Shown: in pieces, positions 1 through 19,071 of the stretch
How positions within the stretch are numbered: position 1 is the stretch's first letter
How the letters are laid out: each line of letters starts with the position of its first letter
Source: Piromyces finnis finn
Lineage: Eukaryota > Fungi > Neocallimastigomycota
Assembly (NCBI GenBank): GCA_002104945.1
Contig: MCFH01000166.1
Location: 1-22,186 of the forward strand
Reading direction: 5' to 3'
Length of the DNA: 22,186 nucleotides
Notes under the pieces: generated by a model
Told to the model about the DNA's origin: nothing
Seen by the model: the letters and a program-made list of their open reading frames with translations, nothing else
Database searches by the model: none
Position numbers and translations under genes: made by a program

Positions 1-797
1 GGATTATTTGATATGTTTCTTAATTTATAAATTTAAGTTAATACATGTAATTATTAATTTAAAAATGATAAAATATATATTAATAGATTAATAGTATAGT
101 TTATTTACAATTTTATTTCCATTTTTTTAATTTTTTTGGAATTGAACCACTTAAGTTATTTTCTGCTAAATTTCTATAAATTATACAAAGTAAAAAAAGT
201 TATATGTACTTATAACATTTTATTTCATATTATTTTAATTAAAAAAAAATTTAATTACAAAGATTTTAAATTTGATAAATTCCCAAGTTCAGGTGGAATA
301 GATCCTGATAATTCATTATGAGCCAAGAATCTTTCAATTATAAAAACAAATATTAAATATAGAAATTATTATTATTATTATTATTATTATTTTAACTACA
401 GTTTTTCTAATTTAGATAGTTTTCCTAGTTCTGGTGGAATAGAATCTACTAAATAATTACTACTTAAATCCCTAAAAGTTAAAATTTAATAATAAAGAAA
501 TTATTAATAATTATAATTATTTTAAAAATTATAGAAATATATGACAATTAAATTACAAGGTTTTTAAATTAGATAGGTTTCCAAGTTCAGGAGTATAGGA
601 CCAATTAAATCATTTAAATCAAGATCTCTGTTTTAAATAAAAATTAAAATTTGCATGAAATAATATTAAAAAGAATTATTATATAAATAATGTTATTTTA
701 ATTTATTCTTTTTTTTAATACTTACAAATTTTTTAATTTAGATAATTTTCCTAGTTCTGGTGGTATTTGACCAGATAACGTATTATTGGAAAAGTCT
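1..797 (-). pseudogene. Mirror (inverted) copy of the partial LRR-TM gene; probably an assembly fold-back rather than a second locus
   Basis: Minus-strand AG/GT-bounded exons at 797-726 (72 nt), 627-557 (71), 471-400 (72), 330-259 (72), 173-109 (65) and 18-<1. Apart from 1-nt indels they are identical to the plus-strand exons at 925-1730. Confidence 0.7.
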
Positions 798-1730
798 CTA
801 TTTTACATGTCATTTAAATATTAATAAAAGTAAAAGATTTAAATATTATAGTAATTATTAATAATATGTTAATTATTAATAAATTTTTTACTTTTATTAA
901 TATTTCAAATGACATGTAAAATAGAGACTTTTCCAATAATACGTTATCTGGTCAAATACCACCCAGAACTAGGAAAATTATCTAAATTAAAAAATTTGTA
1001 AGTATTAAAAAAAAGAATAAATTAAAATAACATTATTTATATAATAATTCTTATTTTAATATATTTCATGCAAATTTTAATTTTATTTAAAACAGAGATC
1101 TTGATTTAAATGATTTAATTGGTCCTATACCTCCTGAACTTGGAAAACCTATCTAATTTAAAAACCTTGTAATTTTAATTGTCATATATTTCTATAATTT
1201 TTTAAAATAATTATAATTATTAATAATTTCTTTATTATTAAATTTTAACTTTTAGGGATTTAAGTAGTAATTATTTAGTAGATTCTATTCCACCAGAACT
1301 AGGAAAACTATCTAAATTAGAAAAACTGTAGTTAAAATAATAATAATAATAATAATAATAATTTCTATATTTAATAATTTGTTTTTATAATTGAAAGATT
1401 CTTGGCTCATAATGAATTATCAGGATCTATTCCACCTGAACTTGGGAATTTATCAAATTTAAAATCTTTGTAATTAAATTTTTTTTAATTAAAATAATAT
1501 GAAATAAAATGTTATAAGTAACATATAACTTTTTTTTACTTTGTATAATTTATAGAAATTTAGCAGAAAATAACTTAAGTGGTTCAATTCCAAAAAAATT
1601 AAAAAAAATGGAAATAAAATTGTAAATAAACTATACTATTAATCTATTAATATATATTTTATCATTTTTTAAATTAATAATTACATGTATTAACTTAAAT
1701 TTATAAATTAAGAAACATATCAAATAATCC
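1..1730. repeat. Near-perfect long inverted repeat: arms ~1-840 and ~882-1730, spacer ~40 nt
   Basis: The reverse complement of 1-60 equals 1671-1730 exactly. I followed the match line by line to ~840/882. About 15 differences, nearly all 1-nt indels in homopolymers, and no substitutions inside the LRR exons. Confidence 0.95.
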
Positions 1731-1902
1731 GTTATTAGAAACTGAAGATAATGATTCATCAATTTCATATATAATTATTGCAATTATATGTATTTTAGTT
1801 CTTGCTATAGTAATATTATTAATATATCTAAAAACTAAAAGGAAAATCTATGATAATGGAAATAAAACTAGTACAATTGGCAATACTCTAAAAAAATGTT
1901 AA
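925..1902 (+). CDS. 5'-truncated extracellular LRR receptor-like protein (24-aa plant-type LRRs, single TM helix, short tail)
   Basis: Exons 925-997, 1096-1168, 1256-1327, 1398-1469, 1556-1621 and 1713-1902, all AG/GT-bounded and phase 2. Repeats include LDLSSNYLVDSIPPELGKLSKLEK and LFLAHNELSGSIPPELGNLSNLKS. The last exon reads NISNNPLLETEDNDSSISY-IIIAIICILVLAIVILLIYL-KTKRK...KKC*, with TAA at 1900-1902. The first two exons each carry one extra base (73 nt) that is absent in the mirror arm. No start or signal-peptide exon is present. Confidence 0.88.
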
Positions 1903-4900
1903 AGTATCTAATTGTTCATGAAAGCAAATAGATCTACAAATATACATCTTTTTTAAATATGTTATCAATTATTATTAATAATTTAAATGAATAAAATATA
2001 AATAAAATAATTTTTATTTATTTTATTTTAAAATAGAAACTTTCAATAAACTATAAATTAAAGTAAATATTATATATTAAATAAATAAAATAAATCAAAT
2101 CAATAAATTTAAAATTAACACTCCTTTCTTTCTTTCTTTATATTGGAGTATTTATTAAATTTTGAGAATACTTACTTTTTCTTAATTAGTATATAATATA
2201 TGATTCAACAAGAAAACTATTAATATTAATATATTTTCTATAATAAATATAAACTTATAATTTGAAATAAAAAAAAATAAAAATTGAATAAATTAGTATT
2301 ATTATTAAAGAAATAATAAATTGATTCCCACTTTTATTAAATACCAATTATATCATTAATATATTAATTAATTTGAATTCCACACAAGTTAATTTCATAA
2401 AAAAAAAAAAAGGGAAATTTAATAACATCTTCCACAAAAAAATGTAATAATTCCAACAACAAAAAAAATAAAATAAAAATTTTATACTCTTATTAACTTT
2501 AATTGGATTAAAAATGTAGGAAATTATATTTTATTGAAAATTTATTAATAAATTAAGATATAAACTTAACATGATGTATATATCATATATATTATATATA
2601 ATTTAGAGGAAAAAATAATATTAATAATATAAGATATAAATTATTTTTTAGGACTGACTAGAATCCATATTTGAATTGTTTATTTATTGTTAGTATGAAT
2701 AAACCAACATATAAACAATTTTAATTTTTTTTTATGTACTAGAACAATGATATAACATTCAAGACTCAAGAAACTATTATATCTTAAATAAAGTTTACAA
2801 CTTAGTCATTTAAATTTTAAATCTTTAATATACGATAACTTTCAGGTTCTAATATATTCTTTCCAAAATCTTAATTGAAATATACAAAAAAATAACTAAT
2901 CAAAAATTTAAAATCTAAAGCATTTAAATAAGTTAATATCTTTAATTAATAATTTCTAATTCTCTACTTATATACTTATATAAAAACAAGTTTATTAAAT
3001 ATATTGTTTATATCTAATAATTCGTATTTTTAAATTATGTCAATATGTAGATATAATATAATTTAAAAAATATCACAGTCAATAATAAATAAAATTTTAT
3101 TTAAATACTTTAAATACTATTACTTACAATGTTTATTTCTTTATCTCTATTATTTATTTTTTTTAAAAATTAATATATAATTTCTTTGTTAAAAATAAAA
3201 TTTAATAATGAAATGTTGAGGTTTTTTTTTTTTTTTAATTTTTATAAACTGTTTATATTACATATTTAATTGAAGCCATGTCATTATTTCAGCTTTCTAT
3301 TAATAATAGTTGTTTATTAAGTAAAAGCAAATACAAATAAATATTATAAAAAATATTATTATTTTAGAAAATATTAAAAGTTCTTTGTTAAGAAAGTAAT
3401 TTTCTTTTTTCTTCTATTCTAAAAATTTATTTGTTTTTGTATATGAAAGTTTAATTATGAAAGTATTAAACATTTCACCCAGATAAAAATATAATTTAAT
3501 CTCCAATGTAAACTAAATTAATGTCTAAATCATGATAAAAACTAATTTACCATGTTTTATTTTCTGGTTTTACACTTGAGATTTTCTCCTATAAATTAGG
3601 ATTAGGATATGTTACTTTGGTAAATACGAATAAATAATAATTCTTTTTCAAATACACCTCCTATTTTTTAATCACTTGAAAGGGCTAATATCGTTTCAAA
3701 TATTTACACAATCGAAAAAACCTCATTCAAACATAAAAGAAATATATTTAAAAAGAATTTAATAATAATAATAATAATATAATAATATTGTTATTTTAAT
3801 GATAATTTAATAATATAATAAAATATTATTTTATAAGGGTACTTCAATATCAAAAGTTGACAAAATAACAAATCATAATTTTTTTTTTTTAAAAATAAAA
3901 AAAAAATAATAAATTCAAATAATTCATTTTATTTTCAATTTAGTGTATAAAAATATTAACTAAAATTGTCATACTGTTTAATTTTATTTGATATATATAT
4001 ATATATAATATAATAAGATAAACAAAAATTATTTCATGTAATAATTGTATATTTATAAAAATTAATGGAAATATAAATAAAACACAACAAGATTACCAAT
4101 TTTAATACATTTCACCCTATCTATACATTATATAATCTCTATGAGTGCATGCCATTATCTGACATTCTAATTAACACAACGAACGAAAACATTATTTTTA
4201 ATAAATTGTTTCTGTAATAGTCCAATTCTAATAGAAAAGCTCAATAAAATAAATAACAATAATTATGTAAAGCTTAAATAAAGAGAGAATATATTTTAAA
4301 TAACTAATTTTTATAGCAATATTTAAGATGAATTATTTGTTTTTTTTTTAAATGATACTTGAGAAAAAAAGGATATATTAAAATTATAATTTAAAATAGC
4401 ATAGAAAATTAGTATAAAACTTTTATTAAAACATAATTAAATATGTCAATTTACATATTATGTAAAGGAACTGAACCTTTTAATCTATGCTGATTAAAAA
4501 CAATAAATATAATATATTTATTCTTATTTAATGGGCTTTAATTATTAAATTGAGTCATTCTAATAATTAGTAGATATGAAATATAAAATAATAAAAATTA
4601 TAGTTCATTATATAAGTAATTATTGTATTAAAATATTAAATAATGTATATAAATGTAGGAAACATCAAAAATAGCTAATAATTAAATGTTATATTTTTTA
4701 TAATAGTCCATATAGAATTATGTATCTTTAATTATTAGAAATAGGAAAATTATTCATTAATTCTTATTAATTCTATATAGAGCGTATTTCTATAGTATTT
4801 TGTATTGTTAGCCATATGCTATCGGGAGAAATGATAATTTCAAATAGTTTAAATAATAGAAAAATAGTACAATTAAACAGAGCTAACATAATTCAAAATA

Positions 4901-5140
4901 AAATTAAATAATTTAAAGTTCATTAAAAAGAAAATTAATACTTTTCTTAAAAACATAAATAATTACAATTTATCATTGAACCTTATTCCATACACGGATG
5001 GAAAATTTTATTTTTAATTTTTATTAATAGTCCTATAAAAGTTATTAAAGTATTTTTAAAAAATAATAGATTTAGTAGGATTTTTTTTTATTATACCTTT
5101 CATTTTATTATTTTTAAATAGTATAAAAATATTTTTGATA

Positions 5141-7607
5141 ATGAATATATTTATTTTATTGATTAATTTCATTTTTATAATAAAATTTATACTTGCTGAA
5201 AAAGATATTAATAAAGAATGTGAAATAGTAAATAAATTATTAAATATAGATCTATCATTTGATTGTTGTATACACAAGAATATTATATGTTCAGATGATG
5301 GTCATATAATTAGAATGTAATGAATTAATATTAAAATATTTATTTCATTATTAGATATTTATAATTGTAAATATTTTTTATTAGTAGTATTAATAACAAT
5401 TTTTATTAAATAAAAGAAATTTTAATTTTGGTTATTCAAATTCTGATGAAGTTGAAGATATTACAAATGAAAAGTAATACGTTTTTTTTTTTTTTTTTTT
5501 AATATTACTAATATTACTTTTTATATAAATGATCATTATATATTCAAGATTTTATAATATTTATTAATAAAATATTCAAATATATTTTTACTGTTTAAAT
5601 AGATCCATACCACCTGAATTTGGAAATTTAACATATCTAACATATTTGTAATGCTTTATAATACATAATAAATATTATATCTATTAAAAAATGATTTTTA
5701 TATTTATATATATTTTTATTTGGAAACAGGAGTATAAGTGGAAAAAATTTAAAAGGTTCTATACCATCTGAGCTCGGAAACTTAACAAATCTAGAATATT
5801 TGTAAATGCTTTTTTACCTAATTATATTATTTTATTAATCATCAAATATGTTTTTATATTTATAATAACATATTTTGTACATTTCAATAGATATATATAT
5901 GGAGATAAATTATCTAGTACCATACCACCTGAACTTGGAAACTTATCAAAATTAGAATATATGTACTGTATTTATTAAAATTTCTTATATTAATTATTAT
6001 TGTTATGTTTATTAAATTTTGAATTTACTTTTAATTCATTAAAGATATTTGCATGGAAAAAGTATAAATGGTACTTTGCCATCTGAACTTGGAAATTTAA
6101 CAAATTTGAAAGAAATGTAACTATTTAGATATCATTTTATGTTACATGTTTATGAAAAAGGCATTAATTTATTATATACTTTATACGAAAAAAAAAAAGG
6201 TATATTACTAGAAATAATATAACAGGTTCAATTCCTTCTTCACTTGGAAAATTATCAAATTTAAAAAACATTGTAATTAATTAAAAATAATAATTAAATA
6301 TCAATCAATTAAATACTATTAAATAATAATTTATTATTTCCCATAACTTTCATTTGAAAAGAGTTATAGATCAAAATTTAATAGATGGTAAAATACCATC
6401 CGAACTTGGAAATTTATCAAATCTGGAAAGAATGTAATAATAAATGGGTTTAATATTTATATTTATAGTTGATGTAATATATTAATTAGTATATTAAATA
6501 CTATACATTTATTGATTGATACTTAATATTTTATTAAATATAAAAAAGTGATTTTTCATATAACTATTTATCTGGACATATACCTCGGGAATTTGGAAAA
6601 TTATCAAAATTAAAGAATTTGTATATATTTAAAAAATTTTAAAACATTATTATTTAAAATTAAATATTTACTTATTATGTAATATACATAATTATTATTT
6701 TATTTAAAATAGAGAACTTAATATAAATGATTTAATTGGTTCTATACCTTCTGAACTCGGAAATTTGTCTAATTTAAAAACATTGTAATTGCTGAATGTT
6801 AACATACTTTATTTTAATAAATGAATATTATTACATATTTACTATTATATTTAATATTAAATGTATAATTTAATATGATAGAGATTTATCCGATAACTTT
6901 CTGGTAGATTCTATTCCTCCTGAACTTGGAAAGCTAACTAATATGGAAAAATTGTAATTAAAATAAAAATAACAACAACAACAATAATAATGATAATTAA
7001 TAATAAAAAATATAACATATTTTTTTGCATAATATCTTATTTTTGTATAATATAGAGATTTATCTTTTAATAAATTATCAGGATCTATTCCATCTGAGCT
7101 AGGAAATTTATCTAATTTAAAATCTTTGTAATTAAAAGTTTTTATTATTTATTGAACAAGTTAACAAAATATAATATAATATATTTACAATTTTTATTTT
7201 ATTGTTAATATTATTTTAATATGAAAAACAAAATAGACTCTTAAATGATAATAATTTAAGTGGTTCCATTCCAAAAGAATTAAAAAAAAAGGATATAAAA
7301 TTGTAAATAAGTTTTACTCTATCAAAATATAAATTTAAATATACTTTAATATAAATTTCTTTTTATTATGATGTTAAATTATTAATTATATTATTTTACG
7401 TTTTTAATTCAAATATTAAGAAATGTATCAAATAATCCGTTATTAGAAACTGAAGAGGATAAAAGGTCACCTCTTTTAACGATTATTATTATTTCAGTAT
7501 GTATTCTATTATTTATTACAGTGGTGGTGTTAATATATCTAAAAGCAAAAAACAGAAACTTTACCATAGAAGAAAGTAGAAATAATTCTTCAAATGATGA
7601 AAATTAA
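5141..7607 (+). CDS. Complete type-I membrane LRR receptor-like protein (signal peptide, Cys N-cap, ~11 LRRs of 24 aa, TM, short tail), ~392 aa; one 1-nt insertion in exon 7
   Basis: 14 exons: 5141-5316, 5417-5473, 5603-5647, 5730-5801, 5891-5962, 6045-6116, 6200-6272, 6362-6433, 6549-6620, 6713-6784, 6882-6953, 7056-7127, 7237-7302 and 7421-7607. All introns are GT-AG, phase 2. Signal-peptide-like start MNIFILLINFIFIIKFILA; N-cap EC..N.LL....DCC....I.C..GHI; repeats LxxLxLxxNxLxGxIPxELGxLxx; TM LLTIIIISVCILLFITVVVLIYL followed by KAKNR; TAA at 7605-7607. Exon 7 is 73 nt (A6 where the related exon 10 has A5). Confidence 0.92.
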
Positions 7608-10080: not shown

Positions 10081-10508
10081 GGAACCTACAATTTATATTA
10101 AATATTAAAAATATATGATAGTACATTTACAAAAGAAAAAGTCAAAAATACTGTATTCCCTGATTCATTTGGATCCATGCCATATGTGGAATTAATGTAT
10201 AAATATTATATATATTATATTTGATTTGATATTCAATAGGAATTCTAAATTTTTATTAATTAACTGACTCGATCCCATCGGATATAAAAAATATTAAATA
10301 TTTAGAAGCTTTGTAAAAATGAATTAATGAATTACTTTAAATTATTAATACATAGAAAGAAGAAGACAGTAAACAAGCTTTTTATATATTTTTTAATTTT
10401 AATTATTAATAATATAGAGATTTAAGTAATAACAAATTAGCAGATTCAATTCCTTCGGAAACTGAAGACCTAAAATATTTAGAATTCTTTTAAAATAAGT
10501 TTATACTA

Positions 10509-10716
<208 letters not shown>

Positions 10717-11105
10717 GAAATTTTATTTTCATGTTATAATATTTTTTAAAAGATTAAAAATAAATGACTGTAACAGATATGTCAAGGTTAATTCTGGTTT
10801 AACTGGTGAAATACCTGATTTAAATATTTATGATAATATGGAATTGAATCCTGCAAATAAAACTTGTCAATTACAACTGGATTATGTTATACAATTATTA
10901 GTAGAAGATGCAATTATTACGGTCTTAAAAAGTGTATAAATCTATTATTATTTATGTTTATTTATCTTTTAATGAAATTAAAATATAAATAGAAATCTAA
11001 CATTATAATATAATAATCATAGGTCCAAAAGAAGATCCAATTGAAGATGATAGTATATAAAAATAAAAATTATAAAGATTTCTCTTTTTTTTTTTAATTA
11101 ATGCT

Positions 11106-11284: not shown

Positions 11285-11896
11285 TGTAATGAAGATAAGG
11301 ATGTAAATTGTGAAGAAAAAACTTATAACTTGGTCGTTGATGAAGATAAACATTTACTTCAAGAAGACAAATCTATACCAGGTTTACTTTATTATTGTGA
11401 AACTAATAATGATATTTTTGAATGTAATAAAAAAGGGGATTTAGGTTATTATATTAATAGTAAGAATGGCATTTATACCTGTACTCAAAAAGGATGTTCT
11501 GGTTATAAATTCGGTAAAAGTTCAAATGGAAAGATTGAAGTTATTGATGATAATCAATTTAATATTTATTTAATCTACAAAATTACAGCAGATGTTACAA
11601 TGCCAGCTAAAAACTATCTTGTTGGACATGAATGTGTAGGTAGTATTTTTGGAACAAGTAAGAATGGAGATTATATCATTATAACTATTGATGAAAACTC
11701 TGTCACTTCAAATTCTTCCTTTGATCACTCTGTCCCTAAATTTGTTTATACAAATTCATTAACAAACGAAATATTAAATAGAGAAAGTTGTTCAATTGAT
11801 ATTACAGAATTTGAATATAACGAATCAGACGATGTTTATAACAAACATCGTGAATCTTTTAACCAAAAAATACTGTATTTTGTAAATAATATGTAA
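11285..11896 (+). other. Terminal exon encoding a Cys/Tyr-rich module resembling anaerobic-fungal scaffoldin-family repeats
   Basis: Open frame CNEDKDVNCEEKTYNLVV...GLLYYCETNNDIFECNKKGDLGYYINSKNGIYTCTQKGC...SIFGTSKNGDYIIITIDENSV. From memory, the G.LY.C...C....GYYIN....Y.C....C pattern matches Neocallimastigomycota scaffoldin-like repeats; not verified by search. Confidence 0.55.
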
Positions 11897-13606: not shown

Positions 13607-16600
13607 ATGATATTAAAATTTATTATGAATTTATTGCTATTGATTACAATAGCATTTGGATATTCATGCGAAGAAATTTGTGAACAACTAAAAGTAGAAA
13701 ATTATAATAACTGTAAAGAGGATAGTAATGGAGATGCCATTGAATTGTATGTATTGATATTATTAATAATGAAATAAATATATTATTCTTATCTACTTGG
13801 TAGTTTATCAAAAGTACTAAAAAAATAAAAAAAATATTAAGATTAATGTCTAGAAAGGACTTATTAGAGATTCCTGAATTTATTTTTAATGTAACAACCT
13901 TAAAAAAATTGTAAGTAAATAAAGTTAAAATAAGTTAAAGAGAATCACCCTAAATTATCCACCTGTATATATTTTATATTTTATTCATTTATTTAAATAA
14001 ATTTATATAGAGATCTTTCTATAAATAAATTGACTGAAATTCCAGTTGAAATAGGAAATCTTAAAAATCTTGAACATTTGTTTGTATATTTTTTTTTAAT
14101 TATAAAATAAAAGTATTTATAAATCAATTTTAGTAAATAAATATTCATTTTAATAAAAAAATTAAAAAAAGACTTTTATACAAAAATGATATAAACAATA
14201 TTCCAAATGAAATAGGAAAACTCACTAATCTAAGATATTTGTTAGTAATTATTTTTTAAATATTTAAATATAAAATTAAATAAAAACATTAATAATAATA
14301 GTTAAATTATATATAAAAAATATAATAGAGATTTAGGCTATAACAATATAAAAAATATCCCTAATGAAATTGGTGAATTAAGAGGTTTATGGAATTTGTA
14401 AGTGCATTTTTATCACATGATTATTATCATAATTATTATATTTTATTAATTTTCTTATTTTAAAATAAAAATACAAAATAGACATTTAAATAGTAATGAA
14501 ATTTCTTCCATCCCAGATTCATTTGGAAATTTGACTGAACTTTGGAGTTTGTATGTATTATTATTATTTATAGTAAAAATATAAGAAATAATAGTAATAA
14601 ATTATTTTATTGTATAATAATTCTATTTTTAAAAAATTAAAGAGATATACAAAATAATAAATTAGAATTGGTTCCGTGTTTTTTTGGAAATTTTACCAAT
14701 CTTGAAAAATTGTATGATAATGCATATATAATAAAATTAATAAGAGAAAAAAAAATTTCATTGTAAAGTTTTAATAATTTTTAAAAATTAAAAAATAAAT
14801 TAAAAAGAAATTTAGGAGGTAATGATTTTTCTAAAATTACCTCTGAAATTGGAAATCTTGTTAATCTAAAAGAGTTGTATGTGTTCCAAAAAAAAAAAAA
14901 AAAAAAAAAAAAAGATATTAAATATTAATTATTTTAACATTTATATTGATTTTTAATTATTAATATAATTATATAAATTTATAGAATTTTGTACGGAAAT
15001 AATTTAAAAACTCTTCCTGATACCATTGGAAAACTTACAAATCTTGAACAACTGTAAGTGCTAAATTTTTAAAATACAATTAAATTATGATTTATTTTTT
15101 TTTTAAAAAAAAAAAGAGAATATAAAAAATTTATATTATTATTGAATAGAATTGAAATTTCATTCTTTTTAAAAAATTCTAAAATATTTATTTATTCATT
15201 TTTTTTTTGAAAATTGTTTTATAGGAGTTTAAATAGTAATAGTTTGGAAACACTTCCAGATTCAATTGGAAACCTTAGTAATCTCACTTTACTGTATGTT
15301 TTTTTATTTAGAAAATAATTAAAATAATAATAGTTTTTTAATATTGATGCTTTTCTTTAAAATACTTTTATAGGTATTTAAATTATAATAATTTAAAAAC
15401 TCTTCCTGATACCATTGGAAAGCTTACAAAACTTGAACAACTGTAAGTGATAAATTTTTAAAATACAATTAAATTATGATTTATTTTTTTTTAAAAAAAA
15501 AGAGAATATAAAATTTTATGTTATTATTGAATAGAATTGGAATTGTATTAATTTATTCTTTTTTTTTTTTTTGATAATTGTTTTATAGGTATTTAAATTA
15601 TAATAATTTGGAAACACTTCCAGATTCCATTGGAAATTTTTCTAATCTTTCATCTCTGTATAAATTTTGTTTTATATAATTTGATGAATACTTTATAAAA
15701 TAAATAAATATTTTTATAATCAATTATTAATATTTAATATTTAATATTTGTAAATATTAGAGAGATGATAGAAAATAATTTATCAACTCTTCCCGATTCC
15801 ATTGGAAATCTTACAAAACTTGAAAGAATGTATGTTTTTCTTGATTTAGAAAATAATTAAAATAAATATTAAAGTTTTTATTTAAAATAATCTTATAGAG
15901 ATTTATTCGGAAATAATTTAACAACTCTTCCTGATACCATTGGAAAGCTTACTCAACTTCATTGTTTGTAAGTTTTCATTACATTTTAAAATAATATAAT
16001 ATAATATAATATAATATAATATAATATAATATAATATAATATAATATAATATAATATAATATAATATAATATAATATAATATAATATAATATAATACATA
16101 AAAATACTTTATTAAATATTTATATATTTTTCATATTATTTAATTTACTAAGATATTTGTCAAACAATAATTTAACTGTCCTTCCTGATTCTATCGAAGG
16201 AATGATTAATCTTACTTATTTGTATGAATTTAAATAATTGAAAAGTAAAAATAATACTTAATTATTAATATATATAATTGTATTTATTGTATTTTATAGA
16301 TATATAAGTAATAATAGTTTATCTGAGATTTTTGATAAAATAGTAAATCTTCCAATTGAGTATTTGTATGTTTTTCCTCTTTTTCTATGTTAACAATATT
16401 ATGCTTTATCTTATGAAAAATAATATTAAAAAATATTTATAAAATATTAACTTAAATAGAAATTTAAATTATAATAATTTTACCGAAATTCCTGATTCAG
16501 CTGGAAAGCTTTCTAATATTAGAGTTTTGTATATTATTCTTTATATTATTTATATAATCAAAGAATTTATAATAATAGTGGAGATAATTTAATGATAATA

Positions 16601-19071
16601 TTTTAAATATTTTCATAGAGAATTGTCTAATAACAAGATATCTAAAGTTTCAAAGGAAATTGTAAATTGCAATGAAAGCTTTTCATTGTAAGTATTTATC
16701 ATAAAATCATTATATATAATAATTATAATTTAAAATATTTTATTAATTATATATTTATTTATATAAATTTAAATAATCCATTAATATTTTTAAAGATATT
16801 TAAATAATAATAGTTTAACTGAGATTCCTGCTGAACTTGGAAATGTTTGGAGATTGTATAGATTTATATTATTTATAATAAAAGTATTATATACAATGAT
16901 TTAAAATTTAAAATATTCTATTAATTATATTTTTTTAAAAATGTAAATAATAATTTAATTAATATAGAGAATTAAGCGATAATAAAATTACCGAGTTTCC
17001 TTTTAAAACAGGAAGAATTGAACATTTGTATGTATTTATATTATTTATTATAAAAATATTATATGTATAATTAATTATAGTTGATATTTATATAAATTTA
17101 ATTAATCATCATTTAATTAATGTAGAGAATTAAACAATAATAAAATAACCAAGATTCCTCCTGAGATTGAAAATCTCACTAAACTTTATTCACTGTATAT
17201 ATTTATTATTTATCTTTAATTATATATTGAAATATTTGATTAATTAATTTAAATAATAATTTAATTAATATAGAGAACTCAATGATAATAGAATTAGTGA
17301 GATTCCTCCTGAGATTGGAAATCTCACTAAACTTTATTCACTGTATATATTTATTATTTATCTTTAATTATATATTGAAATATTTGATTAATTAATTTAA
17401 ATAATAATTTAATTAATATAGAGAACTCAATGATAATAGAATTAGTGAGATTCCTGCTAAGTTTGGGGGTATTAAATATTTGTAAGCATTTATATTACTT
17501 ATTATTAAAGTATTATTATAAATAATTAATTATTAATTAAAATATTTTATTAATTATATATTTATTTATATATATTTAATTAATGTAGAGAATTAAACAA
17601 TAATAAAATAACCAAGATTCCAGCTGAAATTATATATAATTATATTCAACATTTGTATTTAATCAAAAACAGATTATATAATAAAAATATAGTCTAAATA
17701 AAATGAAAATATAAATAATTTATTAATTATATATTTATTTAATTATTAATTGAATTAATATAGATATTTAAATGATAATTACATAACTAAGCTTCCCTGG
17801 AAGGAGATAAAAATACATTTTAATTTGTATTATCATTTTTTATAAAAGTATTATATATAAAAATTGAAGTATTTAATTAATTGAAATAAATTTATTATAT
17901 AGATGTTTAGATAATAATTACATTACTGAGCTTCCCACTATTAAAAGTGAATATATTTTTATTAGGTAATTATTTAATTAAATCATTATAAAATTATTTT
18001 ATGTATCTATTAAAATTTAACAATTTTATTATTTTGCTTTTTTTTTTAACAAAAATTTTATATTTTAAAAATAAATTAATAGTTTAATTAATAATTGTAT
18101 TACTTCATCACCAGTAATGACAGGAGACGAAAAATATTCTCTGTATTGTATACTATTTTTTAAATATAAATTTGTTTAATTAACTTGAAAGAAAAAAATT
18201 GATAATAATATAAAATAATTTTATTTTCGCTATTTATATAAATTTAATTAGTTATTTAGAAGAAAATAATGACGAAAAATGTAAAAATTTAAGAAAATGT
18301 GGTGATCAGTATGAAGAATGTCCTCTTGATCAGTTCTGTACTAATAATGGATTTTGTGTAGAAGATAAGTTTAATATATCTAATAATAGTGAAGAAACAG
18401 TGACAACAACTTTCACTTCAAGTGAGGAATTAGCAACTACAACTTTTGAATCAATGACAGATAAAGAATTAACAACTACAACAACTCATCCAAAAGTTAC
18501 TACTGAAGAAACAAGCATAATTGAAAAATTAACAACAACAACAATTCAACCAACAACTTCTGAATCAATTACAAGTAAAATTACAAATATTAAATCTAGT
18601 ACAACCTCAATGGTCAAAACTATGATAACTTCTTCAACAACAACAACTACTAGAACTACTACAATAATCAAAGCATCTACTACTAGAACTACTACAAAAA
18701 CAAAGACTACAACTAGCACTACCACTATTAAACCATCCTCAACTTTTCATCCATGGCAATGTGGAAAAGGTATTAGATCCTGTCAAAAAGGATATTGCTG
18801 TAGTAGATATGGTTGGTGTGGAAAAAGTAAGGATTATTGTGATCTTGCTCAAGGTTGTCAATCTGAATTTGGTCATTGCAAGAAATACACTCCAGAAAAA
18901 AAGCATCATCACGAAAATGCAAACTCTAAAATTCATCCATGGAAATGTGGTAAAGATATTGGTTCCTGTAAGAAAGGATACTGTTGTAGTAAATATGGAT
19001 GGTGTGGTAAGAGCGAAGCATACTGTAGTAAAGAACAAGGATGCCAATCTGAATTTGGAAAATGTTGGTAA
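13607..19071 (+). CDS. Secreted LRR / Thr-rich stalk / tandem CBM18 chitin-binding protein, 28 exons, ~899 aa, apparently intact
   Basis: Exon 1 is 13607-13746 (MILKFIMNLLLLITIAFG-YSCEEIC...). LRR exons: 13842-13910, 14011-14079, 14172-14240, 14329-14397, 14482-14550, 14643-14711, 14808-14876, 14985-15053, 15225-15293, 15374-15442, 15589-15657, 15761-15829, 15899-15967, 16153-16221, 16300-16365, 16460-16528, 16619-16687, 16796-16855, 16968-17027, 17126-17194, 17274-17342, 17422-17481, 17589-17654, 17764-17826, 17903-17965 and 18083-18142 (60-69 nt, all multiples of 3, GT-AG, phase 2). The last exon, 18252-19071, is in frame with ORF 18400-19071. The spliced sum is 2700 nt with no internal stop. 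Consensus LxxLxLxxNxLxxLPxxIGxLxx. Confidence 0.94.
15001..15640 (+). repeat. Older tandem duplication of a two-exon LRR unit (exons 9-10 vs 11-12)
   Basis: 15001-~15150 and ~15390-15540 share the exon 3' part (aatttaaaaactcttcctgataccattggaaa...gaacaact) and the following intron (gtaagtg.taaatttttaaaatacaattaaattatgatttattttt...). Confidence 0.85.
15991..16095. repeat. (ATAAT)n microsatellite, 21 units, in intron 14 of the LRR-CBM18 gene
   Basis: Perfect pentamer run between exons 15899-15967 and 16153-16221. Confidence 0.97.
17152..17455 (+). repeat. 148-bp tandem duplication of one exon+intron unit
   Basis: 17152-17299 and 17300-17447 differ at one base (ttgAaaat vs ttgGaaat). A third AGATTCCT begins at 17448. 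Confidence 0.93.
18397..18750 (+). other. Thr/Ser-rich low-complexity linker (mucin-like stalk) within the last exon
   Basis: Translation VTTTFTSSEELATTT...TTTTTRTTTIIKASTTRTTTKTKTTTSTTTIKPSST. Confidence 0.9.
18754..18879 (+). other. CBM18 / hevein-type chitin-binding domain 1
   Basis: WQCGKGIRSCQKGYCCSRYGWCGKSKDYCDLAQGCQSEFGHC: 8 Cys, with the CCS-x-Y-G-W-C motif. Confidence 0.93.
18940..19068 (+). other. CBM18 / hevein-type chitin-binding domain 2 (C-terminal)
   Basis: WKCGKDIGSCKKGYCCSKYGWCGKSEAYCSKEQGCQSEFGKCW*. Confidence 0.93.

Follow-up and report, generated by a model that had tools for sequence, protein, structure and literature searches.

Plant LRR-extensins (LRX) are secreted proteins with an N-terminal leucine-rich repeat (LRR) domain, a Cys-rich hinge, and a heavily O-glycosylated C-terminal region that is fixed in the cell wall, with no membrane anchor. 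Anchoring occurs through covalently cross-linked Ser-Pro extensin repeats. In Listeria, InlB combines LRRs with GW modules and is attached to the wall non-covalently. The repeats of plant PGIPs are 24-aa plant-type LSGxIP units. A structural action in the wall is known for the LRR cyst-wall proteins of Giardia and for the Entamoeba chitin lectins Jacob and Jessie, which contain Ser/Thr spacers. Among the early-diverging chytrids, lineage-specific expansions of CBM18 have been described, and a function at the cell wall was proposed for the CBM18 proteins; those of Batrachochytrium dendrobatidis fall into lectin-like, deacetylase-like, and tyrosinase-like classes (PMC3569864). An LRR class is missing from this scheme, and "leucine" does not appear anywhere in the paper (PMC3569864). 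In methanogen co-cultures of gut fungi, CBM18 genes were the most strongly induced CAZy class, and the authors proposed partner association or wall remodelling as their role (PMC8665504). The supplements of that paper list CAZy labels only, without LRR information on the induced CBM18 genes.

The means by which gut fungi attach to plant fibre or methanogens, and by which their chitin wall is protected amid chitinolytic gut microbes, are poorly understood. Few genetic tools are available for anaerobic gut fungi, and candidate surface molecules are therefore useful as starting points. Here we describe an LRR-CBM18 gene of Piromyces finnis. On balance, we favor the view that it encodes a secreted, non-enzymatic surface protein that is tethered to the wall by its CBM18 domains and displays a ligand-binding LRR solenoid.

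Gene Structure and Domain Organization

Within the window (the whole stretch of DNA analyzed, 22,186 nucleotides), the gene is intact and occupies positions 13607-19071 of the forward strand. Its 28 exons form a single frame of 899 amino acids plus stop, ending in EFGKCW. The original prediction of a secreted protein of about 899 residues with this C terminus thus agreed exactly with the 28-exon model, and its outline of about 26 LRRs, a Thr stalk, and a pair of CBM18 domains was recovered from the exon chain, the composition, and the Pfam matches (Table 1). All 27 introns were of the GT-AG type and all 27 were in phase 2, with lengths of 69-185 nt; each interrupts the first Leu codon of a repeat. 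The GC content was 27.1% in the exons versus 9.5% in the introns, a contrast that would not be expected by chance. Every exon from 2 to 27 carries a single LRR of 20-23 aa (60-69 nt). Position 13842 was taken as the acceptor of exon 2 because it results in the 23-aa repeat of the family. An acceptor at 13815 is possible in its place and would add 9 residues.

Table 1. Features of the Piromyces finnis LRR-CBM18 gene (positions in the window)
Feature	Position	Strand	Basis
Start codon and signal peptide, residues 1-18 (MILKF...IAFG)	13607-13660	+	Sole hydrophobic segment (KD19 peak of 2.0 at residue 1)
N-terminal Cys cap (C21, C25, C36), remainder of exon 1	13661-13746	+	Cys positions read from translation
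LRR array, 26 repeats, exons 2-27 (18 of 69 nt, others 60-66 nt)	13842-18142	+	Exon chain, repeat consensus
Tandem duplication of an exon-plus-intron unit, exons 21-23	17104-17466	+	Tandem Repeats Finder: 2.5 copies of a 148-nt period with 92% matches
Cys-rich C-terminal LRR cap (C637-C662), opening the last exon	18252-18399	+	Same open frame as stalk and CBM18
Thr/Ser-rich stalk, 115 aa (residues 677-791)	18400-18744	+	Composition; internal 60-nt and 33-nt tandem repeats
CBM18 domain 1, hevein-type, eight Cys	18757-18876	+	PF00187 37.7 bits; aligns with pokeweed lectin-C and lectin-D
Short Lys/His-rich linker joining CBM18 domains 1 and 2	18877-18942	+	Read from translation
CBM18 domain 2, eight Cys	18943-19065	+	PF00187 37.1 bits; aligns with pokeweed lectins, hevein, and WGA

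In Kyte-Doolittle analysis, the highest windows all lay at residues 1-10, and the hydrophobic stretch was limited to the signal peptide, where A-x-G precedes the likely cleavage site. A similar N terminus is present in a paralogue on C35 of the same genome and in the family alignment consensus. Two Cys near the N terminus are conserved in this consensus, and C26 of the metagenomic homologue P0095 is almost invariant. The hydropathy heuristic detected no transmembrane segment or GPI-type tail; the final 30 residues have a hydrophilic Kyte-Doolittle mean of -0.8. With neither a hydrophobic C terminus nor an internal transmembrane helix by this measure, the protein was not assigned to the GPI-anchored or transmembrane class. 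Pfam searches with the exon pieces gave no match to a catalytic family in any piece of the gene, and no GW or LPXTG anchor modules were found in the domain search of the pieces. Both absences claimed in the original prediction, that of a membrane or GPI signal and that of a catalytic domain, were therefore confirmed at this level. For the Cys-rich C-terminal cap, no convincing match to a Pfam family was obtained (EGF at E 0.07); the alignment of P0095 to the last exon begins at residue 17 of the exon.

Organization and Turnover of the LRR Array

The 26 LRR units are consecutive, and the 18 full-length units gave the 23-aa consensus LxLxxNxLxxIPDxIGNLTNLxx. The scaffold positions are fixed (L1 in 17 of the 18 units, L3 in 15, N6 in 17, P12 in 16, and L21 in 16), and variation occurs at positions 2, 4, 5, 7, 9, and 10. 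The concave face of the LRRs is strongly variable, both between repeats and between paralogues. Single 22-aa exons matched the Pfam families LRR_4, LRR_8, and LRR_1 at E 0.0009-0.03, under the cut-off as expected for one repeat; the homologues described below exceed it strongly. An HMM made from the gene's own repeats gave 29 matches within the gene. Between introns 21 and 22 there is no difference in 79 of 79 bases, and the exon-plus-intron duplication in exons 21-23 is very recent. Together with the layout of one LRR per exon and phase-2 introns throughout, this very recent duplication indicates that the array changes in length by unequal exchange.

CBM18 Domains

The whole last exon matched Chitin_bind_1 (PF00187) with 59.4 bits (E 4e-16; best stretch 231-271), and each CBM18 domain, scored alone, exceeded the cut-off of 27.8 bits. 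Both domains (residues 797-836 and 859-898) contain eight Cys with a CC doublet, and both read CCS-x-Y-G-W-CG-x-S-x-x-Y-C when aligned with chitin-binding lectins of known structure. The sugar contacts of hevein are numbered S19, W21, W23, and Y30; the corresponding positions are Ser, Tyr, Trp, and Tyr in both domains. The conserved Cys and sugar-contact residues fit chitin binding, which is predicted for both domains. The second domain is followed by one further residue and the stop codon (19069-19071).

The Same Architecture in Other Gut Fungi

The diverged paralogue on C35 follows the same plan, with 25 single-exon LRRs and three CBM18 domains. On C162 and C79, also in the same genome, signal peptide, LRR, cap, and CBM18 all lie within single uninterrupted ORFs, and the fusion is therefore independent of splicing. 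An uninterrupted ORF of 797 aa on contig L017 comprises a signal peptide, LRRs, a cap, and four CBM18 domains; its lack of introns does not mark it as cDNA because long unbroken ORFs are common among the LRR genes of this genome. At least 8 of the 22 CBM18 loci examined carry LRRs, and the paralogues contain three to five CBM18 copies.

An architecture search for LRR plus Chitin_bind_1 without a catalytic domain had been suggested with the original prediction. Both Pfam domains were present in all 10 homologues tested, which included deposited proteins of the gut-fungal genera Anaeromyces and Neocallimastix. GenBank entries with LRR and CBM18 include ORX80363.1 and ORX88191.1 (Anaeromyces robustus, "L domain-like protein"), ORY44592.1 (Neocallimastix californiae), and, under the name "RNI-like protein," ORY26122.1, KAL6628661.1, and KAG4087234.1. 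In local BLASTP, the gene model was collinear with P0095 (28.7% identity over about 572-574 aa, E 5e-41) and matched P0021 with 25.6% over 684 aa (E 6e-39). The order in this gene and in the members is signal peptide, N-terminal cap, LRRs, Cys-rich C-terminal cap, linker, and C-terminal CBM18, with no other domain. The deposited Neocallimastigomycota proteins likewise start with their LRR array and carry Chitin_bind_1 at the C-terminal end; they share 25-37% identity over the LRR part and differ in LRR number, linker length, and CBM18 count (1-7). What sets the Piromyces gene apart from them is the unusual regularity of its 23-aa repeat, the coding of every repeat by its own exon, and the long Thr stalk. 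The gene is thus one member of a family that recurs in anaerobic gut fungi, not a one-off. The architecture had been considered unusual, which does not hold given its recurrence at several loci and in two further genera; common as the family is, it is not a characterized one, and our literature search found no paper on it.

In the structure model of P0095, the solenoid (residues about 60-425) had pLDDT values of 75-98, the linker corresponding to the Thr stalk was disordered (pLDDT around 30), and the CBM18 folds were arranged as beads. Foldseek matched this model to LRRC8, LIC, and InlA at E 1e-13, and the nearest solved folds include the surface adhesins internalin A and Leptospira LIC proteins. 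For another homologue, P0118, plant LRR-RK ectodomains (GSO1, FLS2) gave the best sequence matches in the PDB. The P0095 model fits a curved solenoid for the LRRs of the present gene, which is predicted by homology.

Comparison with Described LRR Proteins

The closest functional analogy to the Piromyces protein is provided by LRX. It is an analogy only: the C terminus lacks extensin Ser-Pro(n) repeats, and the stalk consists of 42.6% Thr and 13.9% Ser with only 2.6% Pro. The anchoring is covalent in LRX, whereas in the Piromyces protein it would be a non-covalent lectin-chitin contact, and homology is limited to the generic LRR fold. Like the ectodomains of plant LRR receptors and like PGIPs, the protein is predicted to have an extracellular, capped LRR solenoid. 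It differs from the receptors in having neither a kinase nor a transmembrane segment and from PGIPs in its 26 repeats compared with about 10. A PGIP-like nature, one of the options first considered, is not favored, the repeats being of the 23-aa IPxxIGNLxxL form and not the 24-aa LSGxIP form. In a motif search, the plant-type motif appeared in the window only in upstream neighboring genes, at about 1100-7300. With the Listeria internalins, the protein would share the display of an LRR solenoid on the wall through C-terminal repeated wall-binding modules. The internalins, however, are bacterial, bind lipoteichoic acid or peptidoglycan, and use GW or LPXTG anchors, where the Piromyces protein has CBM18.

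Proposed Function and Alternatives

In the favored reading, once the protein is secreted, its hevein-type CBM18 pair would attach to chitin in the wall of the producing fungus, holding the protein there bivalently and non-covalently. The 115-aa stalk, probably O-glycosylated, would serve as an extended spacer, so placed that the 26-repeat solenoid with its Cys-rich caps at both ends could be displayed at the wall surface. The variable concave face may then bind an external ligand; candidates are proteins and glycans carried by a microbial partner, by an attacker, or by plant fibre. A role in adhesion or recognition rather than catalysis is likely. The original prediction had put forward the same logic of CBM18 anchor, Thr spacer, and displayed LRRs; it gained from the retained sugar contacts and the concordant homologue model, and it still has the standing of a prediction. 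Foreign chitin or free chito-oligomers would be equally plausible targets of the CBM18 domains.

A role in shielding chitin or inhibiting enzymes is a possible, though unlikely, alternative. The protein would coat wall chitin or bind chito-oligomers, and its LRRs would capture or inhibit chitinases and lysozymes of rumen bacteria, protozoa, or the host; an Avr4/CBM18-type shield would thereby be joined with a PGIP-like inhibitor. Secretion, the lack of catalytic domains, and the variable concave-face positions are consistent with such a function. Protection of the wall against chitinases has been proposed for CBM18-only proteins (Abramyan and Stajich 2012, PMC3569864) and also in a Verticillium CBM18 preprint. 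However, the repeats lack the plant-type units of PGIPs, a solenoid of 26 repeats on a 115-aa stalk far exceeds known LRR enzyme inhibitors in size, and our analysis found no link between the protein and any chitinase.

We consider it rather improbable that the protein is a structural wall component whose bivalent CBM18 tail cross-links chitin fibrils while the LRRs self-associate, building up or stiffening the sporangial or zoospore-cyst wall. The multiple CBM18 domains (two here, three to five in paralogues), the Ser/Thr-rich spacer, and the large family in the Piromyces finnis genome would suit this function, and wall remodelling was also suggested for CBM18 genes (PMC8665504). On the other hand, concave-face variability and recent duplication in the array suit diversifying recognition better than a conserved lattice, and no sign of self-association was seen.

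Release as a lectin onto foreign chitin, such as that of other fungi or chitinous gut debris, for attachment or antagonism with the fungus's own wall left undecorated, appears very unlikely. Without a covalent anchor the protein is free to diffuse, and binding of non-self chitin was suggested for chytrid CBM18 proteins (PMC3569864), but the own wall is the closest and most abundant chitin, and nothing found indicates non-self targets. That an artefact of the model joins two separate genes, one with the chain of LRR exons and the other with the CBM18 exon, is scarcely credible, since frame and phase are unbroken over all 27 introns, the last exon (18252-19071) starts with the LRR C-terminal cap and has no in-frame Met ahead of the stalk and no signal peptide of its own before the disulfide-rich secreted domains, the C35 paralogue is laid out alike, single-ORF LRR-CBM18 genes occur in the same genome, and LRR+CBM18 proteins are deposited from other genera.

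Returning to the proposed wall-tethered display protein, its family, with the LRR as a generic protein-binding scaffold on a putative chitin-wall tether, offers a concrete, testable candidate for attachment and protection functions, and it could be a natural display scaffold for engineering gut fungi. It may also supply part of the CBM18 induction in co-culture (PMC8665504). A broader conjecture, which we hold only tentatively and consider unlikely as a whole, is that the LRR-CBM18 genes and their relatives with LRR-TM and LRR-Thr/Lys-tail architectures together make up a repertoire for surface recognition in gut fungi that diversifies rapidly. Symmetric phase-2 exons with one LRR each would let the arrays grow, shrink, and swap repeats, of which the 148-nt exon-plus-intron duplication is an example, interchangeable anchors would direct them to wall or membrane, and the wall members would attach partners such as methanogens or recognize competitors. 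If true, gut fungi would have in this repertoire their own equivalent of bacterial internalins or plant receptor-like proteins. The gene is also a clean case of a one-repeat-per-exon layout with ongoing exon duplication; as a suggestion only, such micro-exon genes may be prone to truncation in automatic annotation.

Gene Structure and Domain Organization

Listing of open reading frames (ORFs) in the bacterial style returned only fragments of the locus, whereas the DNA itself can be read as short exons in series. The exon model was obtained with scripts that chain GT...AG introns under a kept reading frame. It comprises 28 exons with a coding sequence of 2700 nt, corresponding to 899 aa plus stop, and confirms the 899-aa LRR-stalk-CBM18 protein of the original prediction. 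All 27 introns are in phase 2, each interrupting the codon for a repeat's first Leu, and the GC content is 27.1% in exons versus 9.5% in introns. The acceptor of exon 2 is the boundary with the most uncertainty; it was placed at 13842, with 13815 as a possible position. Intron 14 contains a (TAATA)22 microsatellite.

Positions of the exons and of other features in the window and at other LRR-CBM18 loci of P. finnis
Feature	Source	Position	Strand
Exons 1-7	window	13607-13746, 13842-13910, 14011-14079, 14172-14240, 14329-14397, 14482-14550, 14643-14711	+
Exons 8-14	window	14808-14876, 14985-15053, 15225-15293, 15374-15442, 15589-15657, 15761-15829, 15899-15967	+
Exons 15-21	window	16153-16221, 16300-16365, 16460-16528, 16619-16687, 16796-16855, 16968-17027, 17126-17194	+
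Exons 22-28	window	17274-17342, 17422-17481, 17589-17654, 17764-17826, 17903-17965, 18083-18142, 18252-19071	+
(TAATA)22 microsatellite	window	15987-16096	
Tandem 148-nt exon-plus-intron unit	window	17104-17466	
Inverted repeat at contig start	window	234-528 and 1199-1494	
LRR peptides in inverted repeat region	window	302-787	-
LRR peptides in inverted repeat region	window	1257-1426	+
Upstream LRR genes	window	~1100-7300	+
LRR-like exons	window	10150-10480	+
Long simple repeat	window	10490-10732	
188-aa ORF	window	11330-11896	+
Single-ORF locus, second C-cap type	L020 (C162)	1108-2487	
Single-ORF locus, second C-cap type	L018 (C79)	1138-2505	
Other loci with second C-cap type	L029 (C40), L033 (C188), L028 (C211), L036 (C146), L037 (C1)		

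Family searches were run exon by exon, and the joined 899-aa sequence was used for local hydropathy, composition and repeat statistics as well as for BLASTP against retrieved proteins. Because residues 1-18 are the sole hydrophobic stretch of the model, they were read as a signal peptide. Next comes a short three-Cys cap, and exons 2-27 then contribute one LRR each. The 18 full-length units yielded the consensus LxLxxNxLxxIPDxIGNLTNLxx, with almost invariant residues at positions 1, 3, 6, 12, 15, and 21 and variable ones at 2, 4, 5, 7, 9, 10, 22, and 23; the final eight repeats include some units of only 20-22 aa. Matches of single LRR exons to LRR_4, LRR_8, and LRR_1 were weak, as expected of one repeat. 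The last exon opens with a five-Cys cap, whose best family match, EGF with an E value of 0.07, is unconvincing. A degenerate half-hevein domain was considered for this cap and rejected, as Pfam on 18253-18408 returned the EGF match only and no Chitin_bind_1. The stalk of 115 aa consists of 42.6% Thr and 13.9% Ser, with internal tandem repeats of 60 nt and 33 nt. It is followed by two C-terminal Chitin_bind_1 (CBM18) domains, each of which alone exceeds the Pfam cut-off. Both carry the motif CCS-x-Y-G-W-CG...Y-C, and among solved structures they are closest in sequence to pokeweed lectins C and D, hevein, and wheat-germ agglutinin. In line with the predicted lack of a transmembrane or GPI signal and of a catalytic domain, the hydropathy heuristic on the model revealed no transmembrane helix or hydrophobic C-terminal tail, and searches of the separate exons matched no catalytic family. 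The encoded protein is of secreted type and non-catalytic: its LRR array is linked through a Thr-rich spacer to a pair of intact hevein-type modules, and it has no membrane or GPI anchor.

Structure of Homologues and Possible Function

The metagenomic LRR-CBM18 homologue P0095 was modeled as a proxy with AlphaFold2, using a 21-sequence family alignment. The solenoid was predicted with confidence (residues about 60-425, pLDDT 75-98), the linker was disordered (428-554, pLDDT about 30), and the C-terminus formed three small CBM18 folds (pLDDT about 75-90). Foldseek neighbours of the solenoid were LRRC8 LRR domains, Leptospira LIC proteins, Listeria internalins, and SHOC2; for a further homologue, P0118, plant LRR-kinase ectodomains, SHOC2, and LIC proteins were nearest by sequence. 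These neighbours are generic LRR proteins and do not point to a ligand. A search of the ESM Atlas with P0095 likewise gave generic LRR clusters only, with scores <0.9. The best feature-based cluster (0.88, a lead only) was a Chlorophyta LRR family auto-named "Carbohydrate-binding module family 1 protein," and the other matches were mostly Bacteroidota LRR proteins. The Atlas matches may hint at LRR-plus-CBM fusions elsewhere or at the origin of the repeats.

Anchoring to and display from the cell wall is a plausible, unproven interpretation of this architecture. The CBM18 pair would be bound non-covalently to chitin of the fungus's own wall, the stalk, putatively O-glycosylated, would reach outward from it, and the concave face of the LRRs could bind an external ligand, with a role in adhesion or recognition. 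As working analogies, plant LRR-extensins and Listeria InlB come closest; neither is related to the LRR-CBM18 protein. In a fungus-methanogen co-culture, CBM18 was the most strongly induced CAZy class, and the authors suggested partner association or wall remodelling as roles for the CBM18 genes; the supplements of that study give CAZy labels only and nothing on LRRs of the induced genes (PMC8665504).

Alternatively, the protein might act as a shield against chitinase or as a chitinase inhibitor, which we consider unlikely. The PGIP-like variant put forward originally is weakened because the repeats are of the 23-aa IPxxIGNL type and lack the plant-type LSGxIP that the upstream genes carry. 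A structural function, in which the protein would cross-link chitin, appears somewhat less probable again. Binding of foreign chitin, as a lectin, instead of chitin of the fungus's own wall is decidedly improbable.

Evidence for a Single Gene

That the LRR-CBM18 combination is an artefact of the gene model is barely conceivable, and strong indirect evidence from sequence argues that the LRR exons and the CBM18 exon belong to one gene. Reading frame and phase are continuous across all introns. An in-frame Met ahead of the stalk and a separate signal peptide are both lacking from the last exon, which begins with the cap that closes the LRR array and codes for disulfide-rich extracellular domains. 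The diverged paralogue on contig C35 follows the same plan: its signal peptide resembles that of the window gene, its 25 LRRs occupy one exon each (69 nt in 24 of them, 72 nt in the remaining one; phase 2 throughout), and a short cap and linker precede three CBM18 domains. Its CBM18 part is 66% identical, and its C-terminus reads ...EFGQCW-stop.

The fusion exists without any splicing assumption, since single ORFs on contigs C162 and C79 encode the whole plan. These uninterrupted ORFs of 459 and 455 aa, respectively, each comprise a signal peptide, LRRs, cap, and CBM18 (Pfam-confirmed). A scan of metagenome contigs with P0095 as query gave no match, and the same scan with homologue P0060 returned a single intronless contig, L017 (Ga0138314_1372576, 2834 nt), with one ORF of 797 aa that comprises a signal peptide, LRRs, cap, and four CBM18 domains. 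L017 was not accepted as proof of a cDNA because long unbroken ORFs are common among the LRR genes of the P. finnis genome.

Recurrence and Taxonomic Range

A HMMER search with the last exon and no length restriction yielded 819 proteins at E ≤ 0.001. With a local HMM of the gene's own repeats, LRR units were detected in 32 of the best 150 matches, about 20 of which have at least three units. The model is collinear with P0095 (574 aa, E 5e-41) and with homologue P0021 in BLASTP. Named LRR-CBM18 proteins, labeled "L domain-like" or "RNI-like" protein in the databases, include ORX80363.1 and ORX88191.1 from Anaeromyces robustus, ORY44592.1 and ORY26122.1 from Neocallimastix californiae, and KAL6628661.1 and KAG4087234.1 from Neocallimastix spp.; every named match originates from Neocallimastigomycota.

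The architecture had been called unusual, which was overstated: Pfam found LRR plus Chitin_bind_1 in all 10 homologues tested, and among 22 distinct CBM18 loci retrieved from the P. finnis genome, at least 8 have LRRs or an LRR cap directly upstream. This count is a sample, as the census took in the first 20 of about 70 CBM18 loci and the narrow repeat HMM under-detects divergent LRRs. As to a common characterised family, recurrence holds and characterisation does not, as literature searches found no paper combining LRR with CBM18 or chitin-binding in anaerobic gut fungi. A classification of chytrid CBM18 proteins is without an LRR class (PMC3569864). The gene adds a member to a family that is deposited but unstudied and, as far as tested, restricted to anaerobic gut fungi.

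A second C-cap type, ...N-x-N-[IV]-KGKTLTN...C...LC...C..., was observed at other P. finnis LRR-CBM18 loci, some of them single-exon, so several kinds of LRR and cap occur together with the CBM18 tail. A deposited P. finnis model of the gene was absent from the best 150 representatives. P0031 (ORX61250.1) was rejected as such a model, as it maps elsewhere, to contig C1 near 2.50 Mb (L022/L004). This "hypothetical protein" of P. finnis is a miniature of the LRR-CBM18 plan: in 317 aa it has a signal peptide, an LRR-like region that is short and irregular, and three CBM18 domains.

Contig Redundancy, Array Evolution, and Neighbouring Sequence

The window has a GC content of 16% and constitutes the entire contig C75 of the assembly (56.46 Mb, 232 contigs). 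It matches part of contig C177 (~30.8-52.1 kb; stretches L013, L015, and L016) in reverse orientation with 99.6% identity over 21.4 kb. Because the two copies of the gene differ by three single-base indels only, all intronic, and have identical coding sequence, C75 was taken as a redundant or allelic contig and not as a second locus. The C177 copy was accordingly rejected as a paralogue, and the same applies to "second copies" of other window features.

The LRR array includes a 148-nt exon-plus-intron unit repeated in tandem (2.5 copies, 92% matches). All 79 bases agree between introns 21 and 22, and the first 12 residues are the same in exons 22 and 23. The duplication is recent, and from the tandem unit and the identical introns we conclude that the LRR array is still changing length.

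Immediately upstream of the gene lies a Cys-containing ORF of 188 aa, for which Pfam gave no convincing family (best match Pacifastin_I, E 0.05). Further upstream are more LRR-like exons, e.g. ...NNKLADSIPSETEDLKYLE, and after them a long simple repeat whose minus strand reads as a poly-Leu ORF. The genes upstream of these carry another LRR type with plant-like 24-aa units, e.g. ...LSGSIPSELGNLSNL..., and also have short exons. At the contig start, an inverted repeat has arms of 187 and 118 nt with 97-98% complementarity, and minus-strand LRR peptides mirror plus-strand ones. Either a fold-back artefact of assembly at the contig end or a genuine inverted duplication might account for it.
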